A stretch of DNA of 64,000 nucleotides from Macrostomum lignano (GCA_002269645.1 NIVC01002925.1:1-64000), one strand, 5' to 3'; shown: positions 1,499 to 60,046, counted from the first letter of the stretch. Made by a program: numbers and translations. The notes: generated by a model not told the origin, from the sequence alone.

Positions 1499-3717
1499 AC
1501 AGCACGGTAACGAAGGTTGAAACTCGAGTGGAGTTCACCTGGCAGGTGTAGCTGCCGGAGTGCTGCCGCAGCGCCCTGTTGATCCGCAGCTCCGGGCCCG
1601 CACTGCAGTTCCCATCTGGTTGGCACAGCTGCATGCCGCTTGTGTTGTTACCAATGATCTCCGAACCATTGAAGTACAGCGTGCAGCTCACTGCAAAACT
1701 GTCGTTCTCGGCTGCTGTTTGCGCATGCGAGGATGCTGAAAATCAACACGTTATGGTTGCTTTTTGTCTATTAATTGTATTTAAATATGGAGACAAGCAA
1801 TGACACTCAGCTCACACAGCACTGTGACGGAAGTTGACTCTGCGGCAGAGCCAAGCTGGCAGGTGTAGAGGCCAGAGTGCTGCGACTGTGCCTTCACAAC
1901 CGACAGCTTCCAGGTTTTCGTGCAGTTTCCGTCTGGTTGGCACAGCTGCAGCTGCCTTGAGTTCGTGCTCAACTCCGTGCCGTTGCATAGAATGCACGAG
2001 CAGCTCACGTTAAAGCTTTCGTTTGCAGCAACAAGTTGGTCTGTCGATGGTACTGCAAATCAAGTCATATAAATTTATACTTTAATGCTATAATGCTATT
2101 TACCGTGGAGTTTCTCGTGTCATTCATGACCCATGAAGGCCAGCCCCCAATGCACAGAGAGTGCACAAGCCTGATGACTAGAAAGTCAGGCCAAAGCCCA
2201 CAATATTATCAGATATTTTCATGCCACTTTTGAGGCTTCTCTGGTCTTCAAGTGCTTTGGGAAAGTCCACAGCCTCACCCAGGCGCACTGTCTGCAGCGT
2301 CAGATCTGAGACGCTCAGATAGCCGTAGTCTCTGGCTGAGAAGCTCAGGCTCACGTTTCTCCTGAGGAGCAGATACCGGACCTGGGATGTTGCACTCAAC
2401 ATTTTGAGATCCGGGTGAGATGAACTAATTAAGCACATAATCTCTGTAGCATCAATGCTCACCTCTGCAAGACAGTCCACCATGTAGAGCCCATTACGTG
2501 TGCTACTCATCGACCTATTTGTAGTGACACCGCAACGCTTCAACTGCTCAGGTACTTATTAAACTGTTTGCTCATATTTTTGAGTTGCAGTGATTGCCAG
2601 AAAACAGTTGCTCCTCTGAGTTCGAAGTCCAGATCTCGATGCCAGCTGAGCTGCGGAACATTTCAGCATCCGAGAAGACTGAAATTATTGGCCAGATCAA
2701 CGAGATTGTAAAAATACCGGAAGAAAGAGGGTTTCAGGAATGCTGCAGTGATTTAGTTTCATAAGCGAACCGATGACTTTAGGGTTAAATTACAGCATCC
2801 AGCTTAGACAGTCAATAAAAAGCAGCTGCTGTTTTTTATGAAATCAACCAACTAGCCAAGAGTCCTGCTTGGACTCAACCGCAGGGACATCAGGCCGTGA
2901 CCATGGACCTCTCGGTCATGGCTGTTTTGCCAGGCATCGTTACCTTCAGGAAAAATCCGTAGCGAGGAATGATGCCCTTTCTGCCTCTCCGGTGTCGAGA
3001 ATGCGGAGCACTTCATCTGTGAATGCTCCGCCTTTACTCAGGACAGGCTTCACCTACCTCAGCCCAAACTCGGACCTCTCCGACGTTTTCAGGCCCGAGA
3101 ATCTCTGCCAGCTCGTCCGCTACCTAAGGCTACCGCGCTGCGGACACTGGCACCACCGGGATCTCCCTGCAGAACACCGCAGCACCAGCTTCCCTGGTCG
3201 CCAGGGGTTCGCAAAATGGGCGGCGACGCCTCGCTGCATCCGGATGCCCGGACTCCCTGAAGCTATGTCAAGTAAGTTAACCAACTAGTCAATCAGTGCT
3301 TCATAAAACTGGTCTGTGGTGTAACTCACCCTCGCTGCCCTTCACTGTCACAGAACCGATGAGCACTGACTCACTCAGCTGCACAGCGAACCAGTGAAAT
3401 CCGCTATCGTTAAAATGCTTTTTGTCATTGCTGTGAATGAACTGAAAACTTTGGCTTGTGTTCAGAACATTGCTCTCATTCAGCTGGTCTCTCTCGTGAA
3501 AGCAAGAATAGAAATAAGAGGACTGCCAGGCGTTGAGTACAGTCTTGTTGCGAATCGGCACCCCACCTGCAACATAGGAACTTGAGAAGTTAGAAATCCA
3601 TTTCGCTTGAAAAAACACCCTGGAGGGTTTAAAAAGCTTTCACTCACAGTCGCAGAGACAGGTAGCGATGCAGAGCAGAGCCCCTAACAGGGATATCAGC
3701 GCTGCAGCTTCCATCAT
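1499..3717 (-). CDS. Receptor R8 (5' part): signal peptide - FTP-like lectin - Ig x2; continues or is truncated beyond the left edge; frameshifted as assembled
   Basis: Exons (minus): SP 3717-3648 ([23 protein letters not shown]); lectin 3566-3330 ([26 protein letters not shown]), 2678-2463 and 2381-2279 (VRYLLLRR...LSVSDLTLQ); Ig 2052-1816 and 1735-1499. All have GT-AG ends and matching phases except 2678-2463 (216 nt), which is 2 nt short of frame (two apparent 1-nt deletions). Confidence 0.8.
2860..3285 (+). mobile_element. 5'-truncated non-LTR retrotransposon 3' end in an R8 intron
   Basis: [12 protein letters not shown] followed, after a frameshift, by [18 protein letters not shown]. 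This matches the TGH + C-x2-C...H-x4-C C-terminus seen in the 15.3-16.1 kb LINE fragment; ends near a TAAG-like tail. Confidence 0.6.
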
Positions 3718-4829
3718 GCAGACACTTGCTGATCACTTCAAAGCAATTCTGTCGTTAGTACAACAAGCGCAGCAAAAAAGAATCCATTTTGATCTTGTGT
3801 CATGGCTTTTGTATTTGGCTGCAGAAACCATTGATGCAGGGCTGCAGTCGCAAGTTCTGTTCCGGCAGGTGGTGACTACAAGTTCCATCTGTGTATAAGA
3901 CTGCAAGTTGAAATAAAATGTTTACAAACTCTCTGGCTGCAGCTTAGCCAAACCAAGGACTTCTAGATAATAGAAGTCCTTGGCCAAACTGAACTTGGTT
4001 TGAATAAGCGACGAAAATCATATTTGGGTTTCTTGGCTCCGATGGGGACTGAGTTTGCTTGGCCGTCTCTGACTCTGCAGGTGTCGCGACTTTCCTAGTC
4101 ATTTCTTAGTTCACCTCTCTCTCTGAGGCTTTTCATATTACCAATTCCAGAATCAGAATCGGTTCGGATCTTCCAAGAAAAACAGCAGTATAACTATTTA
4201 ACTCTGTTGAATGTTTGACTGCCTTAACAACCTCACTTAGCACAATTTTTCACTTTCTTCTTGGCGATTGTCATTCAATAATAAAAACTTTATAGCACGT
4301 ATCTCCCTCTAGTTATGGAGACAAAAAGTTATACTTCACAAATTGGTTCTGGTTCTGGAACCAGAACAAGCAATATGAAAAGGCCCTCTGTCTAGCTCAA
4401 TCTTGTTATTCTTATCTCTGTCTCCCTCGCCGCCTTCTGATTGGCTCTCCAGTCTCCCTCCGCCCCCCTCTCCTTATTATTCTGGGCTCAACCCCCCAAA
4501 GTTAATGTCTGGTATAAATACCATTAAATATCGGTTTGGGCCCTGCGCCCACTTACTCCTCCAATTTAACTCCAGTATAGGAATTGCTGAAATAGAGTTT
4601 TCTTTTGCATTTATGCAATGCATCGTTGCTTAATGATGAAACTTTTATTAAACTATAACTCAATAATTTCAAACAGACAGGAACAGCTGAAATTTCGCCT
4701 GACAGAGCTCTATTTGGAATTCGGAAGTGCAAAAATCCAGATGCGAATTTAATGGTACACTGTCTCAGTTTACTTGTCTTTGTACATGTACTGCAGATTA
4801 TTACTACTTTAGGTTGACACGCTGGCGCT

Positions 4830-7279: not shown

Positions 7280-10200
7280 TCAGGTCACGTAGACACCAGT
7301 AGCATCCTCCAGGTTGTAACCAGAGTTCTCATACTCCATGGCAGCAGAAGCGGCAGCAACCGGTGCTCCAGATCCAGGCGTCGTGGATCGATCAGACTAA
7401 AGCGCAAAGAGTTCGAACTTTAGCTGTCACAGTTTGAGTCGACTGTACAGATTGAGAAAACCAAAGCTTACCATTGGAATAGTTTGTTTTGTCCACGACT
7501 TATTTACTCTGAATTTGATGACTGAAAACTGAATTTAGCAGATGCAACACGGCAGTTTAGAGCACAGAGACGGAAAATATCATTTAGAGAGAGGGGTTAC
7601 TCACCGAGACCAAGACAAGCAAGAGCACACTTAGCAGAGCAGTTGCTGTTAGAAATCCGTACAAGAACTGTGAAATGTACATGCGTAAGGACTGCACATC
7701 AGGTTTGATGAGACCTTTGTGATTGCCGCAGCTGTAGCAAGCTGAGGCCCTGTGCTCAGCCTTGAACCGGATCTCCGGCGGCAGATTCTGCACTGCGCTG
7801 CACTCGATGAGGCCCACAAGCCACTCTGAGCTCAGCTTCCCTCCGATCGCCAGTGCCCACGTGCTGACCCAACCGTCGCCGCTCGAGCTCTGGAATTGAT
7901 GAAGCTCGCTGGTCAGCATGTCAGCGCGTAGTCACTCATAGTGTGAAAGTGCAAAATGCAAGCGACTCACAAATGACAGCTGCGTGAGGTTTCGCACTTC
8001 CAATCCGCCACCAACAGCGCTGCATCTGTGCTCGGGCACTGGTAGAGATGCAGACGATGCGAACTGTACCAATACGTCGGATGAGTTCTCGCAGGTTGGC
8101 AGATTGAGTACAGAAATTGATGCGCTTGATGGCGGGTCTGTGAGCATATTAAAAAGGGGAATGGAGTTCATCAAGTTCGATCAATAAGCTTTTCAGTTAT
8201 CTGATGGTTTTTATGATTTTTTCAAACCTATTTAGGCCGTGGATCGATACGTATTGAATACCGTACCGAAGATGAATAGAAGTTACTCCACATCATTTGA
8301 GTGCAAAAGTCTATGTGAATATTTTGAATATGTACACATCTCCATCGATCGTTCTACACTGGTTGGTGGATCCAATAATGGCGTCCGAGAGAGAAACCAC
8401 CCCTTTGACAATCCGTTTCCCTTTCCGGACTTAGTTGACATACCCTGTAAGGATAAAAGGCTAATAGAAAGGTGACCTGAAATGCAGCCTGATCTGCTGC
8501 CGTTGAAGGCTGCTCCTACTGCCACCAGTCAGCCTTAAGCTTGCACTCCTTGTGAGCATACACTGAGAATTTTGTCCCAATCTGTGTACGAGAGGAGTCC
8601 CAGTGCAACGCTGCTGTAACCAAATGCTAATCAATCGACTGTCATCCAGAGGCCGGAATCAACTTACAAAACACCGTTAAGAACTTTGAGCTCCGCGAGC
8701 TGCCCAGCTTGCACGTGTAGTTTCCATGGTGCCACAGCTGCGCCCTGTGAATGACGGCTTCAGCTTGTCCAACGCAGCTTCCGTTTGGAAGGCAGAGCTC
8801 CAACTTCGGTGAGAATTCGGTTCGACCGTTGCAGTCCAAAAGGCAGCGCACTGAGAATGCTGAGTGCTGCAGCACCGCCTTGGGGCTCTCGACTTCTGAA
8901 ATGCAATGATTTGAGACACTTTTGAGACGAACTTCAGTCATTTTGCATGTACTGCTAGCGCTTCAACTTAGCACACATACCAGGACTTGGACACAATTCA
9001 TGACAGCCGAGAAATCTTACTGATTTTCCCAGTCTGAAGCCTCAGGTCAGCAAAGCTCATGTGCCCGTCCGTGTCTTTAGACACGTTTCTTCGCAGGAGT
9101 AGACTTCGGACCTGCAGTTTAAATGCTCATCATTTCAGGTTGCTTTAAGAGACCATAAGACTCAAATCACTGCAGATATTTGAAATATTTTTACCTCAGC
9201 AACGCATTTCACGTGAAACATTTCTCCATCTGCGACGTCTCCCTGCTTTTTAGTCACGCCGCATGGCCTCCAAAGGTGCATCGAATTTTTAAACTGAAGG
9301 CCCATATTCCTGATGTTGCAGTTATCCCATGGATCAGGGAGCTGCTAGAGTTGGAGGTAAATATTTCAATGTCCTTTGCTCGATTATAATTATATATCAC
9401 ACCGTCTGAAAATAAGATGAGGAGTTACTTTTGATCTTACTGAAACATATTACTGTACGGTGGAATCTTCAGAGCAGGAGACTCAGTCTTTACAGAAGCC
9501 TAAGGCAGAAAGAAGAAGTAAGTTGTCTTTCACTCACCCTCTCTGCCCTTCAAAGTCACAGATCTGATGATCACTGGCTCATTCAGCTGCACGGCGAACC
9601 AGTGAAACCCGCCGTCTGCTTGGCTTCTGTTGGCGCTGTGGAAGAACTTGTAGCTGGTTTGCCTGTTGCTGATGATGGAGGCTTCGTCTGCCTGATTCCT
9701 GCTGTGGAAACACGTCGGACCATCGTCGAATGATGACTGCCACGAACTCAGAATGCGACTTCGCCGAATTGGGAACTCACCTGATGAAGGCGAGTTAATC
9801 GATTGAGCAACATTGAGCAACATTGAGCAACACTGAGCAACACTGAGCAACATTGAGCAACATTGAGCAACACTGAGCAACATTGAGCAACACTGAGCAA
9901 CACTGAGCAACACTGAGCAACACTGAGCAACACTGAGCAACACTGAGCAACATTGAGCAACATTGAGCAACATTGAGCAACATTGAGCAACACTGAGCAA
10001 CACTGAGCAACACTGAGCAACACTGAGCAACATTGAGCAACATTAAGCAACATTGAGCAACATTGAGAAACACTGAGCAACACTGAGCAACACTGAGCAA
10101 CATTGAGCAACACTGAGCAACACTGAGCAACACTGAGCAAAACTGAGCAACACTGAGCAACACTGAGCAACACAGAGCAACATTGAGCAACACTGAGCAA

Positions 10201-13200
10201 CATTGAGCAACATTGAGCAACATTGAGCAACATTGAGCAACATTGAGCAACATTGAGCAACATTGAGAAACACTGAGCAACACTAAGCAACACTGAGCAA
10301 CATTGAGCAACATTGAGCAACACTGAGCAACACTGAGCAACATTGAGCAACATTGAGCAACACTGAGCAACACTGAGCAACACTGAGCAACATTGAGCAA
10401 CACTGAGCAACATTGAGCAACACTGAGCAACACTGAGCAACACTGAGCAACATTGAGCAACACTGAGCAACATTGAGCAACACTGAGCAACACTGAGCAA
10501 CACTGAGCAACATTGAGCAACACTGAGCAACATTGAGCAACATTGAGCAACACTGAGCAACACTGAGCAACACTGAGCAACACTGAGCAACATTGAGCAA
10601 CATTAAGCAACATTGAGCAACATTGAGAAACACTGAGCAACACTGAGCAACACTGAGCAACATTGAGCAACACTGAGCAACACTGAGCAACATTGAGCAA
10701 CACTGAGCAACACTGAGCAACACTGAGCAACATTGAGCAACACTGAGCAACACTGAGCAACATTGAGCAACATTGAGCAACATTGAGCAACACTGAGCAA
10801 CACTGAGCAACATTGAGCAACATTGAGCAACACTGAGCAACATTGAGCAACACTGAGCAACACTGAGCAACATTGAGCAACACTGAGCAACAAGATTCTG
10901 AAGGCGGCCTACTTTCTACTCACAAAGAACAAAGACTTCTGTCTCAATCTCAATGACGTCATATCTGCAAGTATAAACTCCGGAGTGCATTGCCTGAGCT
11001 CTGTCCACTTGCAGACTTGAATTTGTCAGGCAGCTCCCATTCGGAGGGCACAGCCGGAGGTCGCCACCCAGTGGACGGTCTGAGCACTGCGATGCATTTC
11101 CGCAGTGCAGAGAGCAGCTCACGGTGAAGCTTGCGTTTTCGGAAACTTTCTGGCTCGGAGATGAAGCTGGGAATTTAATAAAGTTCAGATTCATAAATTT
11201 ATTCAAACTGAGCCTATTTCTATTCTATTGAAATGGAAGTTCTTGGTGGAAAAAATCTCCGTGTCCTATCGAATGCATCCTTGCCATCTTTAGTGAAAGC
11301 ATTTTAAGCTAATCAATGACTCACTCAGAACAGCGACTTGAAGTAATTTTGACAGATGTTTCACATGAGCAATGTGGATCTGCTGATTGTGTCGGCAGTC
11401 CCCACTTGGAGTGCACAGCTGCTTAAAAGTACGAGTAGAATATCGACCCTGAGATGGATTTTTCTGATCATGTTCATACTCATACGTCTTCATCCAAGCT
11501 CAAGTCGGAACTCCTACCAGAACTCTGCTCTCTTACTTGGTCACATTTTTTGCCTTGCATGCAGGAATAAATCGCCACACTCATTGCTTTCTACTTGTTG
11601 TAGCGAGCAACTCTAGCTGGTTGTTGCGAGTGCATAGTTAGCCACTCAAAAAGGTGGAGAAATAGAATGTGGCTGTGTCTGTATATTAACGAGTGTTGTC
11701 TGGTAGAACACAGATTACCAGTTCATTGAGTGCGCGTTGGGATGTGCTCGAGCAGAGGGAAGTGGATAGGCTGGGTGGGGGTCACGGAGTGCAAACTATA
11801 GGTGCCCGAACTGCCTGCTTAAGCATGCTACACTTGTCAATAGAGAAACTCTTACTTTTGTACAAGAATGAATCTGGAGACTGATCACTCACTGATCCAC
11901 AGAGAAACTGATCAGTTCTTGTTCAAAAACTGAGAGTGCAAGAAAGTGTAAAATGATCTGAGCAACTTACACAGCACAGCAACAAGTGACGGTATTTCCA
12001 GTGAGCCGAACCGACACCTGTAGAGACCGGAGTTCGATGGCCTGGCACTGGCAATGCTTATCGAGCTCTCGGCTGAGCAGCTGCCGTTCGGGTAGCACAG
12101 CTGAGGCTGGCGGAAATCAGCTGAGCCCGCATGATGCAGTACGCAGCCCAGGCTGAGACTGGAGCCCTCAGGGACCACTTGATGCGGCGTTGCAGCTGTA
12201 AAATAACAAACAGGAATGACTTCATTTGTCAGCGATGTACATGCAGACAGTGACTGACCATTCAGGTGCAAAGCTGCTACTCACAGAGAACAGCCACACT
12301 TGTGACAGCAACCACCTGTCCAATGCTGCAGTTGTAGTCTCCCGATTGTGTTGGAGTTGCCGCTGGGATCTGCAGACTCGTCTGTGCTGTGCAGGTCTTG
12401 TTGGGGCGACACAGCAGCAGCTGTCCGACAGCAGCGGAGTCTGCGCACTGAGCTGCATCGCCGCCTCCGCAGTGCAGAGTGCAGTTCAGCGTGAGGCTGG
12501 AGTTCTCAGCAACCACTTGGTTTGGTGATGACGCTGGAATGCGATACGAAATGGCATGATCAAGGTCTCCGTAATATAAGCTGTCTATATTTAATTTATA
12601 GGAACATTTTAACTGTAACAGGCAGGTTAATATTTAAGGAACTAATAAGAGCAAACTCAAACTACATCAGGCTCTCACATAGGATTGTGATTGAAGACGA
12701 TTGATTTATCGAGCCAATGCTGCAGGTGTAAACTCCAGAGTGCGATGGCTGAGCTCTGTCGACCTTCAGCTCGTTAGTGGCGGTGCAGCTGCCGTTTGGT
12801 GAGCACAGCTGCAGCCTGGCTGAGTGTGTGCTCAGGTGATCAGCTCCATCGCATTGCAGAGAGCAGCGAACTTCAAAGCTGGACTGCTCTGCCACCAGTT
12901 GAGGGCTTGAAATGTCTGAAAGCGAGATGTTTGGATCAATCAAGCACTGATAAATCTACCCTAGCAGTCTCGGTTGAAAAACTTACAACTGTACAGGCTA
13001 AATGGTAAAAGGGAACATGCTAGAATCTTCTTGTTTGAGTACTTCAGGCAAAGGGGAGTATCCCATCTCAGACAAAATTAGAGGGCTCAATAACTGTTTT
13101 TTTCGCGTAATCAAAGAAGCAAACATTTGAGAACAGCTGCTTTACTCAGCGGGAGCGTTTGAAGCCGCAGGTCCGCAAAGCTCATGAAGCCGTGGTCAGT

Positions 13201-13971
13201 TGAAGCAGCTGTAACGTTTCTTCGCAGAAGCAACTGCCGCACCTGAAGTGGTTGCGTTGGTGTTGCGAAATCGGTTGCGATGGTTACCAGATTTCGCTCC
13301 AAAACTCACCTCTGCAACGCAGTTCACTGTGAAGATCTCCCAGCCGCGATCTGTGAATTGTTGCTCTCCGTGACCCCACACAGTCTCCAGTGCTGCTGGG
13401 ACTCTCTGAACTGGCTGCTCATGTTCCTTGATCTGCAGTGATCTCCTGAGAACAGCTGACTGCTGCTGTCTGATGTCCAGATCTCAATGCTTCTGGCTCT
13501 TTCAAAGACATGCGATGCTTTATCTGGAATGTGAGAGCACCGTGAGCAGAGACAGCTGGCTTGGAGCCCGCATTTGAGTGAGTGACTCACCGCCTCTGCC
13601 CTTCACAGTCACAGATCTGATGAGCACTGGCTCATTCAGCTGCACTGCGAACCAGTGAAACCCGCCGTCCGCCTCGCCCTGCCCTTTGCTGTGGAAGAAT
13701 TTGTATCTTATATTGTTTAGTAAGGAATCCTCACGCGACCTGCTTCGTTGGTAGAAACACGTGGGTTCTCCAAAGATGATTCCAAAGGACGACTGCCAGG
13801 TGCTCAGCACGCGGCTCCAACGAATTGGGAACTCGCCTGCAAGTTGGAGCAATGGGGATGAGCAGTGCTCTCTGTCTGCGATTACAACAAGCCGGCACTC
13901 AACTCACACGTGTCAGTCGCTCGTGCGCAGAGCAATGCCAGCAGCAGCAGTAGCAGCAGAGTCAGCTTCAT
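7280..13971 (-). CDS. Receptor R7: SP - FTP - Ig x4 - FTP - Ig - membrane-proximal domain - TM - class II (YEN) tail; three 1-nt frameshifts as assembled
   Basis: Exons: SP 13971-13908 (MKLTLLLLLLLALLCARATDT); lectin 13836-13591, 13523-13310, 13242-13146; Ig 12915-12679, 12533-12285, 12195-11971, 11166-10924; lectin 9780-9538, 9405-9195, 9111-9021; Ig 8895-8668; DPPSS exon 8137-7971; exon with TM (FLYGFLTATALLSVLLLVLVS) 7889-7605; probable tail 7396-7280. Exons 13523-13310 and 9405-9195 are each 1 nt short (GGG where GGGG would keep frame; R4 has GGGG at the second site); the tail has one extra A. Confidence 0.82.
9802..10891. repeat. 10-bp minisatellite (CTGAGCAACA/TTGAGCAACA), about 109 units, intronic in R7
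   Basis: Read directly; fills the intron between an Ig exon and the second lectin; gives the spurious LLSVAQCCS ORFs. Confidence 0.97.
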
Positions 13972-20668: not shown

Positions 20669-21074
20669 TATTAAACCCCAAAAGACTAACGCAGAGTAAA
20701 AGCAAGTGGCACAAAAGACCGGCAGACGCGGCCCAGAAAGGGAAAACGAACCCCTTAAGCGACGAAATATATTGATTTTGTAATTTAAAAGAGAAAAAAT
20801 ATTTTGCCAAAATTACGCCGACTCAGCGGCCGCGACGCGTGACTAAATAGCACAGAGCGGAGGGGAGGCTGCCCTAAGCCCTGCACGCACGCAGAGCACC
20901 AGCACCCCACCAACCCACCAAAGCGAGGCCGGACCGGCGCGGGGGGGTTTAAAACCAGTTAGAGTCAGATACCTGCCTCAAACTGACGTATTAAACCCCA
21001 AAAGACTAACGCAGAGTAAAAGCAAGTGGCACAAAAGACCGGCAGACGCGGCCCAGAAAGGGAAAACGAACCCC
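20669..21074 (-). repeat. 3' terminal B1-A2-B2 block of the DIRS-type element
   Basis: Direct-repeat matches read from the sequence; 40-bp spacer between A2 and B2. Confidence 0.9.
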
Positions 21075-21121
21075 AACACCAACAGAAAGAGGGAGGAAGG
21101 AGACAAGCGTGTAAAATCAAA

Positions 21122-24573: not shown

Positions 24574-24585
24574 ATCAGGCAGGCT

Positions 24586-24785
24586 AAAAATATTTTGCCA
24601 AAATTACGCTGACTCAGCGGCCGCGACGCGTGACTAAATAGCACAGAGCGGAGGGGAGGCTGCCCTAAGCCCTGCACGCACGCAGAGCACCAGCACCCCA
24701 CCAACCCACCAAAGCGAGGCCGGACCGGCGCGGGGGGGTTTAAAACCAGTTAGAGTCAGATACCTGCCTCAAACTGACGTATTAA
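24586..24785 (-). repeat. 5' terminal A1 repeat of the DIRS-type element
   Basis: Matches 20795-20994 almost perfectly. Confidence 0.9.
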
Positions 24786-46407: not shown

Positions 46408-49400
46408 TTATGAGTCTTCAATCTCTCCATCAGCCAGAATCTCAATAAACTCGGTGCATTCGCTGGCAGAGTCCTGCAAATCGGCTGTGGTGGCCTCTGC
46501 CTGACCTCCAGGTGGGATTATTGTTAAGTAGCTGCACTCTGGCAGCTCCTCCGTGCAACAGCAGGCCTGCAAATGTTTCAGTGCGGTGCTTGTGTAGGTC
46601 CGGGTAGAAACACCCACCGTCCCACAACCAGCGTTAAGGCAATTCTGCCCATTCCACTGACTAATGAGCACCTACTTTAATACTGTATGCAGGCACGCCC
46701 TCACACGCTCACACAGGGTGTACAGCGGCCTGACTTTCTAATCGTCAGGCATGTACACTCTCTGTGCCGGGGGGGGGTTGGCCCTCATGGCTGTGAATCG
46801 AGCCTGAGCCCCTGGCCAATTTTGAGCACAAGCCCTAAATGAATGCAGCCGCGCACCAAGCAAGGGGTCGTGTCGCGAGGGTCGGACGCGTTTGTTGAAT
46901 CTGCCGAGCATGAACTTTTGTTGTTTGATTATTTTTTGCCTTAGGTATACTTGCTGTACAAGCAAACCCGAGCGTAGAGAGCAATGAGAAATTAAAAAGT
47001 TGAAAAGGAACTGAGAGATTCGGACGAACTCTGGACAGTGGACATTGTCGGATCGAAGTCATCGGCATAACCAATGTCGACTCCAAACACACTATTGACT
47101 CTATGTGACTGGCCTCATCAAGAACGGAGGTGCTATTTTTGGACGGAGTAGCAAACTTCGCCGTGGACATTGTGCAGAACCGATTTGGCATGTTCGCGTA
47201 CTCGGATGCTGTAACAAAGACAACCCGCTAAATCAAAGTCACGCGTACGACAGCAAACACTGACCGCGCTTCAATTCGTTCAAGTCCTAAGCCGTGATAC
47301 GAAGAACGCTGGCTTCCTTCTCACTCATGACGACTTTGTCAAATATGCTATGAACGGTGATTCAACCGCGCCTGAGAAACCTGAGCATCATCATCCTCTT
47401 GAGTTGAGTTGAGGGGAGTCAAACTCCGCCCAGGAGTGCTTGAGTACAGGCAGTGCTGCACTCATGGGAGTACGCTGGCGCTGCAGTTGAAGCTGTGGAA
47501 CAGATCGGAAGTTCATGAAGTGCGCATGATGACCATATCCAACGCAGCAAGTGTCATCAAAGCTGGGGGTGGGGGCTAGCCCAAGCTGCGGGTGGCCCAG
47601 TCAACAACTGGACTAATCTACTACCGGACGTGACGCCTGGAATGCCCACGAGGCCAGTTCCAACTTGACTATTGACACTCGGAATGCCGACGAGAGCAGT
47701 TCCAACTTGACTAATGACACTCGGAATGCCAACGAGAGCAGTTCCAACTTGACTAATGACACTCGGAATGCCGACGAGAGCAGTTCCAACTTGACTAATG
47801 ACACTCGGAATGCCGACGAGAGCAGTTCCAACTTGACTAATGACACTCGGAATGCCGACGAGAGCAGTTCCAACTTGACTAATGACACTCGTAATGCCGA
47901 CGAGAGCAGTTCCAACTTGACTAATGACACTCGGAATGCCGACGAGAGCAGTTCCAACTTGACTAATGACACTCGGAATGCCGACGAGAGCAGTTCCAAC
48001 TTGACTAATGACACTCGGAATGCCGACGAGAGCAGTTCCAACTTGACTAATGACACTCGGAATGCCGACGAGAGCAGTTCCAACTTGACTAATGACACTC
48101 GGAATGCCGACGAGAGCAGTTCCAACTTGACTAATGACACTCGGAATGCCGACGAGAGCAGTTCCAACTTGACTAATGACACTCGGAATGCCGACGAGAG
48201 CAGTTCCTACTTGACTAATGACACTCGGAATGCCGACGAGAGCAGTTCCAACTTGACTAATGACACTCGGAATGCCGACGAGAGCAGTTCCAACTTGACT
48301 AATGACACTCGGAATGCCGACGAGAGCAGTTCCAACTTGACTAATGACACTCGGAATGCCGACGAGAGCAGTTCCAACTTGATTATTGACACTCGGAATG
48401 CCGACGAGAGCAGTTCCAACTTGACTAATGACACTCGGAATGCCGACGAGAGCAGTTCCAACTTGAAAATCAAAATCAAATCAAACAACAAAAGTTCAAG
48501 CTTCATAGATCCAACAGCGTTTACTGCTGAGCTTCTCTGCCCCCAATGAAGTCCGGTTACTTGTTTATATCTTTCGGAACTCATTTTAGATATAAGGTAT
48601 CAGTTACTGAAAGTAGAGATAGAAATTTAGCAGAATTTTTATGTAAAACAAAAAATATCCATAAAAATTTTGTTCACACTGTGTAACAGTTCGTGTAACT
48701 CACAAACAGGAATAATTCAAAATTTGAGTTCAATAGTTTTTTAAATGACTGGTTGCAAATATTTCTTAAAAAGAAAATAAAACGCATGGCACTCACAGCA
48801 TCTGTCGGCTGCGCATCGTACGGGATCATCATGGAGTTGACCTGCACAATTGAGTAGATCTTCAGCCTGGCAGATGGCGAACTTCTGGAACGAGACCGCC
48901 TGGAAATCCGCTGCAACATGAATAGCATTGAGCAGTGAATCATGCAGTTAAGGGAAGAATAAAGGTCGAAGTGTCCAACAGTTTCTCACCACGGCCGCAA
49001 CCGCAACCAACACAGCAGACAGGGCGACTGCACCGCCAATTGTGGCAGCGGCAATCGCAATGGACAGGGAACTCAAAATCTCCGGTTCTGTGCAGATGGC
49101 TTCCACAGACTCCTGACTCAATACCCGAAAGCCGAGCTGCTGCGGGAGCTGCTGCTGAGCGATGCACTTTATGGAGATGACACCGCCGCTTTGCAGGCTC
49201 GAGTCCGGGACCCACTGGCTGATGGTTCCGTTCTCGCTAGAGCTCTGCAAGCCCGCACCCGTCACAGTCAATTGAGCAAATAAAGGTTAATTTTGGATTG
49301 ACGAATTTAAGACCAACCTGGTGAATGAGTGTGAGATTCTGCATTTCAATTCCAGCAGCTTCTGCGCCGCATCTGTGCTCGGAGATTGGCTCAGACTCTG

Positions 49401-51836
49401 TTGATGTAAACTGCACGATGACATCTGACAGGTTCTGACAGCTGTTGAAATTCAGCACTGACACTGACACTCTCGATGGGGGGTCTGAAAAATATTAAAT
49501 CTGAGTGCATGTTGAGCCACCTGTGATATCCTGTCTGTAATAAGAAACTTTTGAAGAGAATTTAAAGAGCTCACACAGCACGGTGACCGAAGTTCGAGAC
49601 TCCACAGAGCCCAGTCTGCAGGTGTAGTTTCCAGAGTGCAGAGGCTGCGCCACAGCAACGGCCATCCTGTGACTGCCTGTGCAGCTGCCGTTCAGCAAGC
49701 AGAGATGCAGTCCGCTTGAGTTTGAGCACAGATCTGAGCCGTTGCAGTGCAGCGAGCAGCTCATAGTGAGCTTGGAGCCCTTCATCACAACTTGACGCGG
49801 GGAGACTGCTGCAAAAGTCAGTAAGTTACCGAATTAGAATTCAAAATAAAAATCGTCATATTTATCAATAACGAATAAAAGATTGACAAGATATGCTTTT
49901 CTCAGGATTACTTGACACCATCATTAAATTAAAGGCATCGATTTGGATCTGACAGAAATGTGTCAGTAGAAAATGAAAGTGACATGCCTGACAGCCCATC
50001 CCAAGTCACACAGTCACGCACTCACAGCACAGAGACAGGCTTGCCAGCTTATGCCAAGTCTGCACTCACACAGCACAGAGACATGCTTGCCAGCTTATGC
50101 CAAGTCTGCACTCACACAGCACAGAGACATGCTTGCCAGCTTATGCCAAGTCTGCACTCACACAGCACAGAGACATGCTTGCCAGCCCATGCCAAGTCTG
50201 CACTCACACAGCACAGAGACAGGCTTGCCAGCCCATGCCAAGTCTGCACTCACACAGCACAGAGACAGGCTTGCCAGCCCATGCCAAGTCTGCACTCACA
50301 CAGCACAGAGACAGGCTTGCCAGCCCATGCCAAGTCTGCACTCACACAGCACAGAGACATGCTTGCCAGCCCATGCCAAGTCTGCACTCACACAGCACAG
50401 AGACAGGCTTGCCAGCCCATGCCAAGTCTGCACTCACACAGCACAGAGACAGGCTTGCCAGCCCATGCCAAGTCTGCACTCACACAGCACAGAGACAGGC
50501 TTGCCAGCTTATGCCAAGTCTGCACTCACACAGCACAGAGACAGGCTTGCCAGCCCATGCCAAGTCTGCACTCACACAGCACAGAGACTGCAGTGCGCAT
50601 CTCCACAGAGCCCAGTCTGCAGGTGTAGCTTCCAGCGTGTTGAGGCTGCGCTCTGGGAACCCGCAGCTCCCGTGATGCATTGCAGCTGCCGTTCGGAAAG
50701 CAGAGCTGCATCAGAGCTGCTAAGCCAGCATCTGACTGGTCTGTGCAGCCCAATGAGCAATTCACTGTGAAGCTGGAGTTCTCCGCAACGAGTTGAGCTT
50801 CTGAGATCCCTAAAACGTAAAGTTGTTCACAGGTAGCAGCAGTTCAGGTACGATATTTCTGACATTTGAGCAGCTGCAATCACCACAGTCGTGACTTACT
50901 CAGCTGCAACTTTTGAAGCCGGAGGTCAGCGAAACTCATGTAGTCAAGAGAGCTCGAGACGTCCGCGTTTGTTATGCTTCTTCTAAGAAGAATGTACCTC
51001 ACCTGAGAATTTGTTATTGAAAAACAACTTTCTAACAACTCTGCAGCAGGTTGTTTATTCTACTTAATAAGATTATTTATTATCCATCATTATAGAGTTT
51101 GCTAGTAAATATATACAGGCAGTTTAAATTTGAAATGTATTCACCTCAGCCATGCAATCCACTGTGAAATTTTCACCAGCGGAAATTCTTGGGCCGCCCT
51201 CAGTCAGCCCGCACCGTCTCCAGAGATGCAGTGATGCATTGAACTGGCTGCTCATGCTCCTTGAACTGCAGTGATCTCCTGAGAACAGCTGGCTGCTGCT
51301 GTCTGATGTCCAGATCACAATGCCTCTGGCTCTTTTAAAGACTTTCGATGCACCATCTGGAATGCGAGAGCACCGTGAGCAGAGACAGCAGACTTGGAGC
51401 ACGCATTTGAGTGAGTGACTCACCCTCTCTGCCCTTCACAGTCACAGATCTGATGAGCACTGGCTCATTCAGCTGCACTGCAAACCAGTGAAACCCGCCG
51501 TCTGCTGAGCTCTGGCCAGCGCTGTGGAAGAACCGGTAGCTAAAGGTTTTGTTTTTGAGCACGGATTCCTCATCAGTGTGGCTTCTGTTGTAAAAGCAAG
51601 TTTGGCCGTCGCCAAAAGACGACTGCCAGGAGCTCAGCACGCGGCTCCTGCGAATGGGGAACTCGCCTGCAATAATGAGCACAGATTGAGCACTTACATT
51701 CTTTTTATTCATGCTGACATTCATTGCTCATGCAGAACTCACAGTTTGCTCCAACTTCAGCATGCGCGGCTGTCTGGACCAGCAGCAGCAGCAGCAGCAG
51801 CAGCAACAGGTCTGCCATTGCGAACCAGACCTCCAT
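46408..51836 (-). CDS. Receptor R3: SP - FTP - Ig x2 - membrane-proximal domain - TM - class I tail
   Basis: Exons: SP 51836-51743; lectin 51666-51424, 51356-51145, 51002-50900; Ig 50809-50576, 49808-49575; 49484-49318; TM exon 49244-48990 (ILSSLSIAIAAATIGGAVALSAVLVAVAAV); tail 48910-48797 and 46566-46408 (LPECSYLTII...SECTEFIEILADGEIEDS*). All phases are consistent. Confidence 0.85.
46690..46830 (-). mobile_element. Partial SINE (GAGAGTGTACATGCCTGACGATTAGAAAGTC core); similar pieces at about 2140-2200, 31120-31210 and 58085-58230
   Basis: Core sequence match read by eye. Confidence 0.6.
47655..48465. repeat. 42-bp minisatellite, about 19 units, in the R3 tail intron
   Basis: Unit TTGACTAATGACACTCGGAATGCCGACGAGAGCAGTTCCAAC. 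Confidence 0.95.
50017..50588. repeat. 46-bp minisatellite, about 12 units, containing the R3 Ig1 exon end and its 5' splice site
   Basis: Minus-strand unit GTCTCTGTGCTGT|GTGAGTGCAGACTTGGCATGGGCTGGCAAGCCT. Confidence 0.93.
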
Positions 51837-52099: not shown

Positions 52100-52423
<324 letters not shown>

Positions 52424-52635: not shown

Positions 52636-56782
<4,147 letters not shown>

Positions 56783-57153: not shown

Positions 57154-57625
57154 GTGACTGACTGACTGACTGTGACTGTGACTGACTGTGACTGTGACTG
57201 TGACTGTGACTGTGACTGTGACTGTGACTGTGACTGTGACTGTGACTGTGACTGTGACTGTGACTGATTGACTGTGACTGTGACTGACTGTGACTGTGAC
57301 TGTGACTGACTGTGACTGTGACTATGACTGTGACTGTGATTATGACTGTGACTGTGACTATGACTGTGACTGTGACTGTGACTGACTGTGACTGTGACTG
57401 TGACTGTGACTGTGACTGACTGTGACTGTGACTGTGACTGACTGTGACTATGACTGACTGACTGACTGACTGACTGACTGACTGACTGACTGACTGACTG
57501 ACTGACTGACTGACTGACTGACTGACTGACTGACTGACTGACTGACTGACTGACTGACTGACTGACTGACTGACTGACTGACTGACTGACTGACTGACTG
57601 ACTGACTGACTGACTGACTGACTGA
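57154..57625. repeat. (TGACTG)n / (TGAC)n compound microsatellite
   Basis: Read directly. Confidence 0.97.
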
Positions 57626-57840
57626 TTGAAGCGACGGTGCTCGGCAATGGACATCGAGAGGTCAGCGTTTATTTTGAAATTCAAAGATTTATTTGTGCTG
57701 AATACGAGTATTAACCATTGAAACTGAACAATTGCTTGAGTTCATTAAAACAAATTTCAGCTCGCACTCAAGAACAGGTGCCCTGTACACAGATGCAGTG
57801 CATGCAAGGTGAAGAATCTGATGATCATTGAAGCAGCTCG

Positions 57841-60046
57841 CTAGTTGGCATCGGCCACAATTTCCAAATAGACGGTGCAGTCGCTTGCGGTGTCCGAATT
57901 CCTGTCCGAGTTGTCGGCGGGCTCGGCGTTGGGATTCACCGACAGGTAGCTGCACTCGGGCTCGCAGCTGCGGGCGGTGACGCGCGGTCGCAGCGTCGGC
58001 TCCGTCTGAAATCGGTGGAGCCGGCTCGGATTTCATCATCAATTCATCATTGCTCATCAGTTGTTGAGCATTCGAAGTTTCAATATTCGCAGGAGCAGGC
58101 ACTCACACACACGCTCACGCGGGGTGTACAGCGGCCCTGACTGTAATCATCAGGCATGTACAGTCTGTGCATGCATGAAAACCCAATGGCCTATTTTTGA
58201 GCACAATGCCCAAATGAATGCGGGGAATCGTGTACCACTGAGCTTCCCTGCTCCTGCATGAGCCATCACAGCAGTATTCTGTACAGGGGTCAGATGCCTC
58301 TCACCTTGCGCACTGCCTTAGCAACGCCAGCCGGATTATCTGGCACATTGCTCAGCTTTGCTTCGGGACTTGAGGACTGCAACTGTCTGCTCTTCAGTTT
58401 CAGCTTCAGCTGGAATTCGAAATTCGGTTATTCTCTTACCTGTCAAAAAAAAATCAAATTGACCAGTTACTGACCAGAGCGACGCCGCAGATTAGGGCGG
58501 TTAAAACAAATACGAGGGCCGACACAGTTGCTGAGAAGGTTGCGTTGCTGGCTGAGTTCGGCGATGAGGCTGCAGGTGCGAGAGAGAGTGAATGAGAGGT
58601 CACTGAGACTGTTGTGAATGAATGAGAGGTCACTGAGACTGTTGTGAGTGAATGAGATATCACTAAGACTGTTGTGAATGAATGGGAGGTCACCGAGACT
58701 GTTGTGAATGAATGAGAGGTCACTGAGACTGTTGTGAATGGCTGAGAAATCACTAAGACTGTTGTGAATGAATGAGATATCACTGAGACTGTTGTGAGTG
58801 AATGAGAGGTCACTGAGACTGTTGTGTGAGTGAATGAGAGGTCACTAAGACTGTTGTGAATGAATGGGAGGTCACTGAGACTGTTGTGAATGAATGGGAG
58901 GTCACTGAGACTGTTGTGAATGAATGGGAGGTCATTGAGACTGTTGTGAGTGAATGAGAGGTCACTGAGACTGTTGTGAGTGAATGAGAAATCACTGAGA
59001 CTGTTGTGAATGAATGAGAGGTCACTGAGACTGTTGTGAATGACTGAGAAATCACTAAGACTGTTGTGAATGACTGGGAAATCACTGAGACTGTTGTGAA
59101 TGACTGAGAGATTTTATATTAAAACCAAGAGAGAATAATTTCAGTCATTAGTTTACCTGGCGGGTTTTTAGGTCGCCTAACCTGCAGTCTGAGATCCGCA
59201 AAGCTCATGACATCATCGTCATCTGTGTCCGGTTCCTTGCTTGACACGTCCTTCCTTAGCAGCAGGTGATGCGCTGGCTTGGATGTCTGAAAGCAGTTCA
59301 GCTACTGTAGTTGCAGTTTGGCAGCAATTTAGCCTGCATTATTGACAGAACCCACCCCATTCTCGCAGGACACAGTGAGAAGTTCACCACGAGTGATGCT
59401 TTCCAGAGAGCTGTTAATCACACCGCAAAGTGTCCATTTTGGCAGTGAATCATTGAACTGCCCGCTCATGCTTCTTGAAGTGCAGTGCTCATCGCCGGAG
59501 AACACCCGCCTGCTCCAGCTCGATGTCCAAATTTCAATGTCGATCACTCGGTTGTAGGTGTATTGAACTCCGTCTGAAGTGAAATTTTCCCAATTTAGGA
59601 GTATCAGCAAATTGCCGAGTATGAAAGACAGTGACTGACTCACCCTCTCTGCCCTTCACAGTCACAGAGCTGATCAGCACTGGCTCATTCAGCTGCACTG
59701 CGAACCAGTGAAACCCGCCGTCAGCTTGGCTCTTGCCTTTGCTGTGAAAGAACCGGTAGCTTTTCTGCTTGTCACTGACAACTGAGGCCTCCTCTGTCTG
59801 GCTTCTGTTGAAGAAGCAGGTCTGGCCGTCGCCAAAAGACGACTGCCAGGTGCTCAGCACGCGGCTCCTTCGAATAGGGAACTCGCCTGCAATGATACCA
59901 CGGTATCTACGCTCGTACTCGTATCAGGAGATTTCGATGACTCATTGTCAGACCAAGAAAGTCAGTTACTCACTCGTGTCAGAATTGTCAGCGGCCGATC
60001 CTTGCAAGATAAAAATGAAGATCAGTCCTGCTAATTGGAGCTTCAT
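57841..60046 (-). CDS. Receptor R1: SP - FTP - Ser/Thr/His-rich repeat stalk - TM - class I tail (no Ig)
   Basis: Exons: SP 60046-59974 (MKLQLAGLIFIFILQGSAADNSDT); lectin 59886-59644, 59573-59356, 59286-59157; stalk+TM 59103-58475 (629 nt, open frame, ends SALVFVLTALICGVAL); tail 58409-58305 (LKLKLKSRQ...) and 58005-57841 (EPECSYLSV...DCTVYLEIVADAN*). Confidence 0.85.
58580..59105. repeat. 30-bp coding minisatellite forming the R1 stalk
   Basis: Unit GACTGTTGTGAATGAATGAGAGGTCACTGA type, about 17 units. Confidence 0.93.

Follow-up and report, generated by a model that had tools for sequence, protein, structure and literature searches.

Phase-1 exon cassettes in a tandem receptor cluster of Macrostomum lignano, and their probable diversification by genomic shuffling

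How do neighbouring receptor genes of one family come to differ in the number and order of their extracellular modules and still keep an open reading frame? A 64,000-nt stretch of Macrostomum lignano DNA (the window) holds eight such genes in tandem (G1–G8), all on the minus strand, as is every feature given below. They encode type-I membrane proteins composed of a signal peptide (SP), lectin-like (L) and immunoglobulin (Ig) modules, an Ig-like membrane-proximal (MP) domain, a transmembrane segment (TM) and a tyrosine-motif tail. Each gene has 1–3 lectin-like domains, encoded by three exons (L1–L3), and 0–8 single-exon Ig domains, so that architectures extend from SP-L-TM to SP-L-Ig-Ig-L-Ig-L-Ig5 and vary in both module number and order. 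We consider it about 80% probable that this tandem same-strand cluster inherited its phase-1 cassettes and that genomic shuffling made the architectures.

Eight modular receptor genes

Searching 1.84 billion representatives returned 22 family matches at E ≤ 1e-3, of which 19 are M. lignano records; judged by these sequence matches, the family appears almost confined to this species. The Ig module exceeds Pfam cut-offs (Ig_2, 43.2 bits, cut-off 27; ig, 24.1, cut-off 21.8), and on G2 Ig_2, ig and V-set all do so. A sequence-profile search of the lectin-like unit against the PDB returned no match, and F5_F8_type_C Pfam hits in 7 of 8 lectin units all fall below the gathering cut-off. The AlphaFold2 model of the unit (pLDDT 68, pTM 0.71) has CBM32, F5/8 type C domains and the fucolectins 3cqo and 1k12 as top Foldseek matches (E 2e-5 to 4e-4), suggesting that the three-exon module adopts a galactose-binding-like (discoidin or F-type-lectin-like) fold; 'lectin' is used here for this predicted fold alone. 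The products are probably carbohydrate-binding signalling receptors.

Every module exon was located by tblastn, a single template serving for each class, and boundaries were read at homologous positions and chained to open reading frames. Transcript-based annotation covers G1 (57841..60046), an SP-lectin-TM-tail gene without Ig, with SP at 59974-60046, L1 at 59644-59886, L2 at 59356-59573, L3 at 59157-59286, TM at 58475-58569, a cytoplasmic exon at 58305-58409 and a last exon running to the stop at 57841. BOX15_Mlig012084g1 (P0004), a GenBank protein derived from a transcript, threads onto it residue for residue (288 aa) with the same junctions and phases (0>1, 1>1, 1>0, 0>1, 1>0, 0>0; GT-AG sites); the last exon departs from P0004 by a 9-nt indel that separates the two locus copies. 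Boundaries in the other seven genes were placed by homology, by GT-AG sites and by an unbroken frame.

G2 (52636..56782), SP-lectin-Ig3-MP-TM-tail, is intact and encodes 616 aa in ten exons, all GT-AG, in a single open frame to the stop: SP 56719-56782, L1 56346-56588, L2 56063-56262, L3 55906-55993, Ig 55587-55820, 55278-55508 and 54966-55199, MP1 54714-54880, MP2+TM 53628-53882 and tail 52636-52770. G3 (46408..51836), SP-lectin-Ig2-MP-TM-tail, forms an open chain of 514 aa: SP 51743-51836, L1 51424-51666, L2 51145-51356, L3 50900-51002, Ig 50576-50809 and 49575-49808, MP1 49318-49484, MP2+TM 48990-49244 and a tail ORF ending at 46408; a 46-nt minisatellite begins at its Ig1 donor. Introns of the cluster are rich in minisatellites, and one young retroelement lies within it.

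G4 (32577..45253) reads SP-L-Ig-(Ig relic)-Ig-L-Ig-L-Ig5-MP-TM-tail, and its exons 1–19 form a 1260-aa open frame with all junctions GT-AG and in the phases given below. It comprises SP 45184-45253, lectin a 44331-44573, 44026-44252 and 43730-43820, Ig 43072-43308 and 42366-42608, lectin b 41684-41926, 41350-41561 and 41176-41266, Ig 40823-41050, lectin c 40354-40578, 39847-40049 and 39104-39194, Ig 38795-39034, 38004-38237, 36849-37082, 36491-36739 and 33956-34192, and MP from 33870, with MP1 and MP2 uninterrupted within one ORF and the stop at 32577. G5 (25612..30441), SP-L(broken)-Ig-L-Ig6-MP-TM-tail, carries a frameshift in L2 of lectin a, and the 12 exons from L3 of lectin a onward form an 819-aa open chain: SP 30384-30441, lectin a 30076-30318, 29732-29927 (broken) and 29552-29654, Ig 29243-29476, lectin b 28915-29154, 28626-28837 and 28450-28540, Ig 28131-28370, 27808-28044, 27487-27720, 27153-27398, 26845-27069 and 26544-26771, MP1 26298-26464 and stop 25612.

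Two exon chains end in a type B tail. G6 (17289..20170), SP-lectin-Ig-MP-TM-tail, has SP 20107-20170, L1 19785-20027, L2 19499-19713, L3 19284-19386, Ig 18856-19089, MP1 18606-18769, MP2+TM from 18402 and stop 17289. G7 (7280..13971), SP-L-Ig4-L-Ig-MP-TM-tail, has SP 13908-13971, lectin a 13591-13836, 13310-13523 (1-nt deletion) and 13146-13242, Ig 12679-12915, 12285-12566, 11971-12195 and 10924-11166, lectin b 9538-9780, 9195-9405 (1-nt deletion) and 9021-9111, Ig 8668-8895, MP1 7971-8137 and a tail ORF ending at 7280. G8 (1499..3717), SP-lectin-Ig-Ig, continues beyond the window and is 100% identical to UniProt P0030: SP 3648-3717, L1 3330-3566, L2 2463-2678 (two 1-nt deletions), L3 2279-2381, Ig 1816-2052 and 1499-1735. 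The limits that the initial annotation gave for the module array are exact, G1 L1 beginning at 59886 and the last G8 Ig exon ending at 1499.

Independent sequences support these boundaries. Junction residues of genes 6, 7, 4 and 8 agree with UniProt models P0001, P0003, P0010, P0025 and P0030, per-exon identity of G6 to P0001 and P0003 being 94–100%. A second locus copy (GenBank NIVC01002544.1), which differs from the window in microsatellite lengths and small indels, has 24/24 G1–G3 exons and splice sites identical except for one substitution and one 1-nt indel; every G2 exon is identical, and G3 MP1 shows a C5/C6 difference.

Exon phases and broken lectin exons

The initial annotation held that every ectodomain module is a phase-1 cassette, and the census agrees throughout. 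All 8 SP exons have a length of 1 mod 3 and run from phase 0 to 1. The 28 Ig exons (225–282 nt, multiples of 3) are all 1->1, and the 12 lectin units all have phase-1 outer boundaries, although these cases are paralogues and so do not represent independent events. Within lectin units, L1 is 1->1 in 12/12 (225–246 nt, 0 mod 3), L2 is 1->0 with length 2 mod 3 in the 8 intact copies (the other four carry indels), and L3 is 0->1 with length 1 mod 3 in 12/12; the 8 intact units total 519–591 nt, each a multiple of 3. Every MP exon of G2–G7 and the TM exon of G1 start in phase 1, and the junctions between modules are phase 1 in 48 of 48 cases. The only phase-0 ectodomain introns are the 12 at L2|L3 and those within the MP domain, and no phase-2 intron was found among the ectodomain introns of the eight genes. 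Acceptors are AG in 73/73, and donors comprise 79 GT and one GC (GAG|gcaagt, 28620..28625, after L2 of G5 lectin b). Intron length has a median of 87.5 nt, most introns measuring ~70–130 nt.

Intact ORFs contain Ig-Ig, lectin-Ig, Ig-lectin and SP-lectin junctions side by side, and it follows by logic that all must share one phase; only its value, 1, could have been otherwise. The observed architectures presuppose such uniformity, which does not count as an additional finding.

Four of the 12 L2 exons are frame-broken in the present assembly, with five lesions, all within L2 (MAFFT alignment of 12 L2 exons), a clustering that random error does not fully explain. Only the first lectin of G5 looks convincingly broken: its L2 (29732..29927) measures 196 nt (1 mod 3), and a 16-nt deletion has eliminated the invariant Trp-x-x-Cys-Gly and caused a frameshift. 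The two L2 exons of G7 and that of G8 carry single-base deletions, mostly inside homopolymer runs, and in models from an independent assembly (P0030 for G8) L2 of G7 lectin b and of G8, two of these three exons, are intact. Most single-base lesions are probably assembly or allelic noise, and the earlier description of genes with a broken lectin holds for G5 but not convincingly for G7 and G8.

Cassette traffic and competing explanations

Beyond these exon boundaries, phases and open frames, the DNA preserves recent cassette copying. An Ig-lectin-Ig block of ~2.2 kb, internal in G4 (40577..42732: Ig, an intron with a 30-nt minisatellite, L1-L2-L3, Ig) and terminal in G7 (8475..11288, followed by the MP exon), is 91–94% identical with introns included (blastn), and homology on the G4 side stops at the acceptor of lectin c. 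Exons are 96.8% and introns 91.5% identical, the Ig exons of the G7 block match Ig2 and Ig3 of G4 at 95–96% aa identity, and dN/dS is ~0.31, an estimate from only ~22 substitutions; the copied block is under purifying selection. G4 also contains a tandem duplicate of a single Ig exon (blastn, 308 bp), in which Ig5, together with 46 nt and 27 nt of adjoining intron (37977..38283), matches Ig6 (36823..37126) at 95.8% nt and 96% aa identity, and an Ig-exon relic (42904..42954) in the intron between Ig1 and Ig2, consisting of a 3′ end and T|GTGAGA donor that tblastn aligns to Ig template positions 63–79. Block, duplicate and relic provide direct evidence that breakpoints of cassette traffic are intronic. 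Gene conversion could in principle have produced the G4/G7 block instead of cassette transfer. Mosaics such as this block might also be mis-joined near-identical copies in a redundant neopolyploid assembly, in which small indels and unequal microsatellite lengths do separate the window from the second contig. We regard such an artefact as very improbable: the block copies differ by 3–9% and in minisatellite length and are separated by ~31 kb within a single contiguous sequence, where each has its own exon context and clean intronic boundaries, G1–G3 are collinear and exon-identical in the second copy, and UniProt models from the ML2 assembly keep the two genes apart (P0025 = G4, P0010 = G7).

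These observations bear out the proposal that modules can be duplicated, deleted or swapped without frameshift and support phase-1 cassettes, shuffled in the genome, as the source of architectural diversity. Under the shuffling model, a phase-1 SP exon would be followed by two kinds of symmetric phase-1 cassette, single-exon Ig and three-exon lectin-like, and then by a two-exon Ig-like MP domain opening in phase 1 and by TM and tail exons with phase-0 junctions. Phase uniformity would be inherited from ancestral modules, as the standard class 1-1 form of animal extracellular domains, and unequal or illegitimate recombination in introns may have added, deleted or moved cassettes or cassette blocks with the frame kept, yielding the differing architectures across the cluster. 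A phase-1 excess has been described at signal-peptide cleavage sites (PMC1626468).

The initial annotation is only partly supported, in its genomic half. Its other half predicts a use of the phase-1 design at the RNA level, in which regulated combinatorial skipping of Ig or lectin cassettes, possibly splicing between adjacent genes, and rescue of genes with a dead lectin by skipping it would generate an isoform repertoire. In-frame skipping is possible for every cassette, and in G5 the damaged first lectin precedes an intact 819-codon chain that SP>Ig1 or L1>Ig1 splicing would restore to a full receptor. Primate KIR genes offer a precedent, including a skipped exon with a 7-bp deletion (PMC6288254), and symmetrical exons have been proposed to aid alternative splicing of sponge aggregation-factor genes (PMC5400394). 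Automated UniProt predictions likewise join L3 straight to MP1 with the Ig exon absent (P0003), retain L1 only before Ig (P0002) or join G1 to G2 (P0007), but such models mis-splice in this cluster: P0006 and P0027 pick a wrong GT at the G5 GC donor and run out of frame, and the P0007 join uses phase-0 cryptic sites within exons, not cassette junctions. Short introns also count against skipping, since introns of ~70–130 nt usually go with intron-defined splicing, in which exon skipping is uncommon. Purifying selection on the duplicated-block exons is expected if they are normally included. Internal lectins are without an SP exon and lie 88–1143 nt behind the preceding Ig exon, so read-through is unnecessary for multi-lectin arrays. 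The premise of lectin rescue is weak, and domain-recombining exon skipping is itself disputed as largely without transcriptome support (reviewer comment in PMC6335736). We therefore consider an RNA-level use of the cassettes unlikely and splicing probably mainly constitutive.

Slightly less likely still is that the cluster is largely a graveyard of pseudogenes and decaying lectin units whose phases are a fossil of past duplication. The four broken L2 exons, the G4 relic, minisatellite-filled introns and the young retroelement would fit, as would the absence of 7 of the 8 genes from the homologous contig's GenBank transcript-based annotation or from protein hits; that annotation, however, deliberately excluded transcripts overlapping repeats or with RPKM <0.5 (PMC5730564). 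Reading frame and splice sites are intact in all 28 Ig, 12 L1, 12 L3 and 8 SP exons and in the MP exons, uninterrupted chains run to 616, 819 and 1260 codons, and the youngest duplicate has exons conserved above introns (dN/dS 0.31). Among the three L2 exons that carry single-base lesions, two are intact in other-assembly models, and the C5/C6 difference in G3 MP1 is of a comparable kind. Shuffling of inherited cassettes remains the preferred reading.

Comparison with known systems

Snail FREP/CREP/GREP proteins and oyster sperm bindin are expanded, fast-evolving recognition families with Ig plus lectin-type domains or variable F-lectin repeats, and their diversity is attributed to recombination and alternative splicing. 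FREPs are secreted and place Ig N-terminally and the lectin-like FBG domain C-terminally, unlike the flatworm order, and the lectin fold families differ; an exhaustive search found no sequence relationship between the flatworm family and FREP- or bindin-type families.

KIR/LILR genes of the leukocyte receptor complex also form tandem type-I receptor clusters with a variable count of single-exon Ig domains, tyrosine-motif tails that are intact or degenerate among paralogues, and domains gained or lost through intronic recombination, and in-frame Ig-exon skipping is documented there, even for an exon that a deletion has frameshifted (PMC6288254). Orthology with KIR/LILR is not detectable, and KIR/LILR have no counterpart of the lectin-like domains that the flatworm proteins carry at the N terminus and internally. 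The sponge aggregation factor (AF) is likewise a clustered, fast-evolving, lineage-specific family, in which 154/155 introns are phase 1, domains are fitted to exons, including repeated three-exon units, and repeats spanning exons and introns are ~85% identical; its authors suggest shuffling and splicing helped by symmetrical exons (PMC5400394). AF domains are Calx-beta, Wreath and VWA/VWD, and the products are secreted and proteoglycan-like, not TM receptors. Internal introns of the AF three-exon unit are also phase 1, whereas the second internal intron of the flatworm unit is phase 0.

The closest framework is Patthy's class 1-1 exon-shuffling rule for metazoan extracellular proteins (PMC8001218, PMC6335736), under which, as in the flatworm genes, phase-1 introns bound beta-rich extracellular modules, the SP exon ends in phase 1, and module duplication, insertion and deletion preserve the frame; in-frame skipping of class 1-1 exons was already argued in the same papers. 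In the flatworm genes one module does occupy three exons, with internal introns in phases 1 and 0, so that symmetry is confined to L1 by itself and to the unit as a whole. There is no difference in principle: the class 1-1 rule is already known, and what is new is a young, lineage-restricted family that follows it.

Architecture of the receptor cluster

The region 1499-59886 is eukaryotic and carries its genes on the minus strand. A template search with one exon per class recovered 12 L1, 12 L2 and 12 L3 exons of a three-exon lectin-like unit, 28 one-exon immunoglobulin (Ig) modules and one Ig fragment, all in one orientation, and a scan for an ATG, a hydrophobic core and a donor yielded a signal-peptide (SP) exon at exactly eight places, always ahead of a lectin unit. 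Together, these exons define eight tandem genes, G1 to G8, numbered from right to left. With L for a lectin unit, MP for membrane-proximal exons and TM for the transmembrane segment, their architectures are SP-L-TM (G1), SP-L-Ig3-MP-TM (G2), SP-L-Ig2-MP-TM (G3), SP-L-Ig-(relic)-Ig-L-Ig-L-Ig5-MP-TM (G4), SP-L-Ig-L-Ig6-MP-TM (G5), SP-L-Ig-MP-TM (G6) and SP-L-Ig4-L-Ig-MP-TM (G7), and G8 reads SP-L-Ig-Ig before it is truncated by the window end. We rejected the possibility that the internal lectin units are the starts of separate genes: no exon with an ATG, a hydrophobic segment and a phase-1 donor lies upstream of them, and the introns there measure 88-1143 nt.

A profile search run exhaustively against 1.84 billion representative proteins returned 22 relatives of the family at E ≤ 1e-3, 19 of them Macrostomum lignano records. 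A lectin profile took the place of the 1355-residue G4 model, which as a protein query gave no match at E ≤ 1e-10, probably with the word prefilter swamped. No published description was found under the gene identifiers of the family or for M. lignano immunoglobulin and lectin. The new element is the gene family itself, a lineage-restricted cluster of lectin-like/Ig receptors known, in the databases searched, almost only from M. lignano.

Pfam assigns the Ig modules above threshold, with the G2 protein scoring 43.2 bits for Ig_2 (cut-off 27), 24.1 for ig (21.8) and 26.6 for V-set (26). Against the curated threshold for F5/8 type C or F-type lectin domains, the G2 unit reaches 20.5 bits for F5_F8_type_C (cut-off 28.2); matches to F5_F8_type_C or F5_F8_type_C_2 occur in seven of eight lectin units at E values of 5e-5 or weaker, under the cut-off where scores are shown. 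A sequence-profile search of the PDB with the lectin alignment gave no match even at E ≤ 10, and a family was suggested by fold comparison only. Structure prediction and the exhaustive search both used a six-row lectin alignment. AlphaFold2 models the unit with moderate confidence as a β-sandwich (pLDDT 68, pTM 0.71, N-terminal 55 residues poorly modelled), and the Foldseek neighbours of this model are CBM32, F5/8 type C domains and fish fucolectins, with E values of 2e-5 to 1e-3 (best to 4e-4) and TM-scores of only 0.35-0.52. Given the modelled sandwich and its structural neighbours, 'lectin' is a reasonable working label for the fold of the three-exon unit, a putative sugar binder. The membrane-proximal exon pair models as a seven-strand sandwich weakly similar to C-type Ig domains.

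The cytoplasmic tails (57841-58005, 52636-52770, 46408-46540, 32577-32735, 25612-25713, 17289-17447 and 7280-7396) are of two types. Type A, in G1-G5, reads ECSY[LMY]x[VI]...C-T-V-Y-x-E-I-V-A-D-G-D, with F for Y in G2 and G3; type B, in G6 and G7, reads EYENSxYxLE...G-x-Y-[IV] and is unrelated to type A. Measured against the ITIM/ITSM pattern [S/I/V/L/T]xYxx[I/V/L], T-V-Y-L-E-I in G1 and T-V-Y-E-E-I in G4 fit as TxYxxI, and in the conserved ECSY[LMY]x[VI] a Cys occupies position -2. With its two tail types, the cluster recalls systems in which signalling receptors are paired with non-signalling ones.

Other elements are interspersed with or adjoin these genes. Between G5 and G6 lies a minus-strand retroelement (20795-24785) with 200-bp direct repeats at its flanks; their 99.5% identity suggests a young insertion. 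Its open reading frames encode a SAP domain (23527-24573) and a reverse transcriptase (21122-22921; RVT_1, E 3e-17), with a Cys/Arg/Pro-rich simple repeat in between. A plus-strand open reading frame of 203 residues (35219-35830) within a 2.3-kb G4 intron begins in the manner of a signal peptide, matches PAN/apple weakly (E 0.03-0.08), and may be a nested gene or gene fragment. A tRNA-like, SINE-looking stretch at about 53000-53200 occupies part of the G2 intron that separates the TM exon from the tail exon; ARAGORN called no tRNA in it. The next annotated gene, some 9 kb upstream of G1 and outside the window, encodes a 1091-residue protein kinase (Pkinase/PK_Tyr_Ser-Thr; positions 1-1137 of GenBank contig NIVC01002544.1).

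Exon phases and the meaning of the phase rule

The initial annotation had proposed that every ectodomain module is a cassette bounded on both sides by phase-1 introns. Exon boundaries fall at strictly homologous positions, with acceptors of the form cag/N and donors N/gtgagt or N/gtaagt (slash at the exon edge). SP exon lengths are 1 mod 3 in all eight genes; L1 exons are multiples of 3 (12/12), the eight intact L2 exons are 2 mod 3 and L3 exons are 1 mod 3 (12/12); and all 28 Ig exons, at 225-282 nt, are multiples of 3. The eight intact lectin units, at 519-591 nt, are likewise each a multiple of 3, and the outer boundaries are in phase 1 in all 12 units. All MP1 exons run from phase 1 to phase 0, and every inter-module junction (48/48) is in phase 1. 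Phase-0 introns are confined to the 12 within lectin units and those from the membrane-proximal domain onward, and there are no phase-2 introns. Chaining the exons yields uninterrupted frames of 616 codons in G2 (to the stop), 1260 in G4, 819 in G5 (from the L3 exon of its first lectin unit) and 514 in G3. The phase scheme and coordinates proposed at the outset were correct, and the phase pattern is confirmed in full. Acceptors are AG in 73 of 73 cases and donors comprise 79 GT and one GC, the cluster's only non-GT donor (28620-28625, GAG/gcaagt), which opens a GC-AG intron between L2 and L3 in the second lectin unit of G5. The median intron measures 87.5 nt, and 51 of the 72 fall below 150 nt.

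Independent records support these boundaries. The GenBank protein BOX15_Mlig012084g1 (P0004), from a transcriptome-based annotation (PMC5730564), threads exactly on G1 from the SP exon across L1, L2, L3 and the TM exon to the first cytoplasmic exon, in the same phases. Strict threading breaks at the last G1 exon, where P0004 is without three residues (9 nt) encoded by the window and by the UniProt models P0005 and P0007, derived from the older ML2 assembly. We dropped a non-canonical intron as the explanation and attribute the mismatch to an indel between locus copies, because it amounts to 9 nt absent at that point and the window and the GenBank copy differ by small indels elsewhere. UniProt models from the ML2 assembly give the same junction residues for G4, G6, G7 and G8. 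In the second copy of the locus, on NIVC01002544.1, the 24 exons of G1-G3, compared together with 10 nt of flanking sequence, show one substitution and one single-base indel and are otherwise all identical. Over G2-G3 the two sequences are 99.4-99.8% identical by blastn, with a few substitutions and small indels and with differing microsatellite lengths. The window is therefore a further copy of this locus or comes from a different assembly of it. In a homopolymer run at the beginning of G3 MP1 (around 49483; 14518 on the reverse complement), the window has C6 and NIVC01002544.1 has C5, which would frameshift the GenBank copy; single-base homopolymer indels in the coding exons of these assemblies are thus unreliable.

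The modules behave as class 1-1 symmetric exon-shuffling modules. Both flanking introns are in phase 1 around lengths divisible by 3 in the 28 Ig exons and the eight intact lectin units. Introns lie at both edges of the structural domain: Ig exons open 2-4 codons before the first strand and close after the ..VL motif, and lectin units coincide exactly with the β-sandwich as modelled. Mobility is seen within the family, where an Ig-L-Ig block occupies an internal position in G4 but a terminal one in G7, and where G1 is devoid of Ig.

Counted as independent events, these cases would be overwhelming, but the exons are paralogues with inherited boundaries and are not independent. An Ig-Ig junction in an intact gene requires the incoming phase of an Ig exon to equal its outgoing phase; L-Ig and Ig-L junctions then hold the lectin unit to that phase, and the SP and MP ends follow from the SP-L and Ig-MP junctions. 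This leaves the value of the phase as the single degree of freedom, and a uniform phase is a necessary property of the architectures that adds no surprise. Across Metazoa, phase 1 is what extracellular modules show, and it is also found where signal peptides are cleaved (PMC8001218, PMC1626468). The phase rule is itself nothing new, being the standard exon-shuffling signature of animal extracellular proteins, and publications going back decades already give in-frame skipping as its consequence. More worthwhile is what follows the rule here: an undescribed lectin-like and Ig receptor family with eight members in 60 kb.

Several introns carry minisatellites. The G3 Ig1 donor is the exact start of a 46-nt minisatellite (about 50040-50580, roughly 11 copies), each copy comprising the last 13 nt of the Ig1 exon and GTGAGT and together forming a row of decoy 5′ splice sites; as 46 mod 3 is 1, only the first copy preserves the frame. 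Intronic 30-nt minisatellites at 58602-58812, 41956-42344 and 9780-10900 contain no stop codon in the frame used by the exon downstream and present a phase-1 AG every 30 nt; the first is S/T-rich and precedes the G1 TM exon, and those in the block shared by G4 and G7 are Cys-rich (LLSVAQCCSV) and precede L1. These could permit in-frame exon extension. We set aside the idea that they are hidden coding stalks, as the chance of an open 10-codon repeat is about 60% per frame.

Cassette exchange and broken lectin exons

The initial annotation had also argued that such modules can be duplicated, deleted or swapped between genes, and the window supports this through three traces. A block consisting of an Ig exon, an intron with a 30-nt minisatellite, L1-L2-L3 and a further Ig exon is common to G4 (40577-42732) and G7 (8475-11288) at 91-94% identity, introns included. 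Downstream of it lie a further lectin unit in G4 and the membrane-proximal exon in G7, and homology stops at intron positions. The ~2.2-kb Ig-lectin-Ig block was copied between genes recently enough that intronic breakpoints still show. Its exons are 96.8% and its introns 91.5% identical, with a dN/dS of about 0.31, indicating that both copies are under purifying selection. Within G4, Ig5 and Ig6 form a 308-bp tandem duplicate (95.8% identity), and the 3′ fragment of an Ig exon persists with its donor in an intron. Genomic cassette movement is therefore supported as the classical, textbook exon-shuffling mechanism.

Four L2 exons in the window are broken in frame (2463-2678, 9195-9405, 13310-13523 and 29732-29927). 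In the first lectin unit of G5, a 16-nt deletion removes the invariant Trp-x-x-Cys-Gly and looks real; an intact 819-codon chain then follows, so that G5 is the only gene well suited to testing whether skipping can rescue a broken lectin. The other lesions are of single bases: both G7 lectin units are one G short in a G-run, and G8 L2 is missing two single bases. These are probably assembly or allelic noise, because L2 is intact in the ML2-derived models P0010 (second G7 unit) and P0030 (G8, otherwise 100% identical), because the two copies of the locus differ by a C5/C6 run in G3 MP1, and because the L1 exon adjoining the broken L2 of the second G7 unit differs from its G4 twin at 2 of 243 nt, against 8.5% in introns. 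In practice, a one-base indel in a homopolymer run of these assemblies should not be taken for pseudogenization. All five frame-breaking lesions fall in L2 and none in the 28 Ig, 12 L1 or 12 L3 exons. L2 exons contribute about 17% of module length and hold 28% of the homopolymer runs, with a density of runs of length 4 or more about twice that of Ig exons, and random assembly error does not fully account for the concentration of lesions there.

Splicing predictions and wider meaning

From the phase rule, the initial annotation had further predicted combinatorial splicing, read-through between genes and rescue of broken lectins by skipping; the premises of these predictions are partly weakened. 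G1 is the sole gene that GenBank calls within 10 kb on NIVC01002544.1, and the sole protein encoded in the window among family matches with a GenBank record. The missing annotation of G2-G8 says little, because that annotation left out transcripts overlapping repeats or with an RPKM below 0.5 (PMC5730564). Several automated UniProt predictions resemble isoforms: P0003 joins G6 L3 straight to MP1 in frame without an Ig exon, P0002, from another locus, passes from L1 to Ig, and P0007 joins G1 to G2. We rejected these and P0001, which uses a weak GTCAGG within an Ig exon, as isoform evidence, since all are computational models and the sister models P0006 and P0027 are mis-spliced at the single GC donor (28620-28625) with loss of frame. 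The P0007 junction runs in phase 0 from a GT within the last G1 exon to an AG 5 nt into G2 L1, and is not the cassette route. Read-through is not required for multi-lectin arrays, because internal lectin units without an SP exon already lie 88-1143 nt after the preceding Ig exon. Short introns favour intron-defined splicing, in which skipping is uncommon. Killer-cell Ig-like receptor (KIR) genes offer a precedent, with in-frame Ig-exon skipping well documented, including that of an exon with a 7-bp deletion (PMC6288254); by this analogy, cassette skipping in the window genes is plausible, though unproven.

Public RNA-seq exists for M. lignano, a model amenable to transgenesis and RNAi, making the cluster a convenient place to measure the real skipping rate of symmetric cassettes, which is disputed. 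It is also a place to seek the recognition or immune receptors of flatworms, about which little is known. At a probability of roughly 15%, the cluster would be a Macrostomum-specific diversifying recognition system, serving for example innate immunity, allorecognition or gamete/partner recognition. Its repertoire would arise from ongoing cassette exchange between neighbours together with in-frame skipping, and its paired tails, tyrosine-intact or tyrosine-lost and of type A or B, would give opposing outputs. The closest parallels to the flatworm cluster are the KIR/LILR clusters and the sponge aggregation-factor (AF) cluster, in which 154 of 155 introns are in phase 1 and domains are also encoded in repeated three-exon units (PMC5400394). 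If the recognition-system reading is true, the cluster would be a flatworm counterpart, of independent origin, to KIR/LILR, snail FREPs or sponge AFs.
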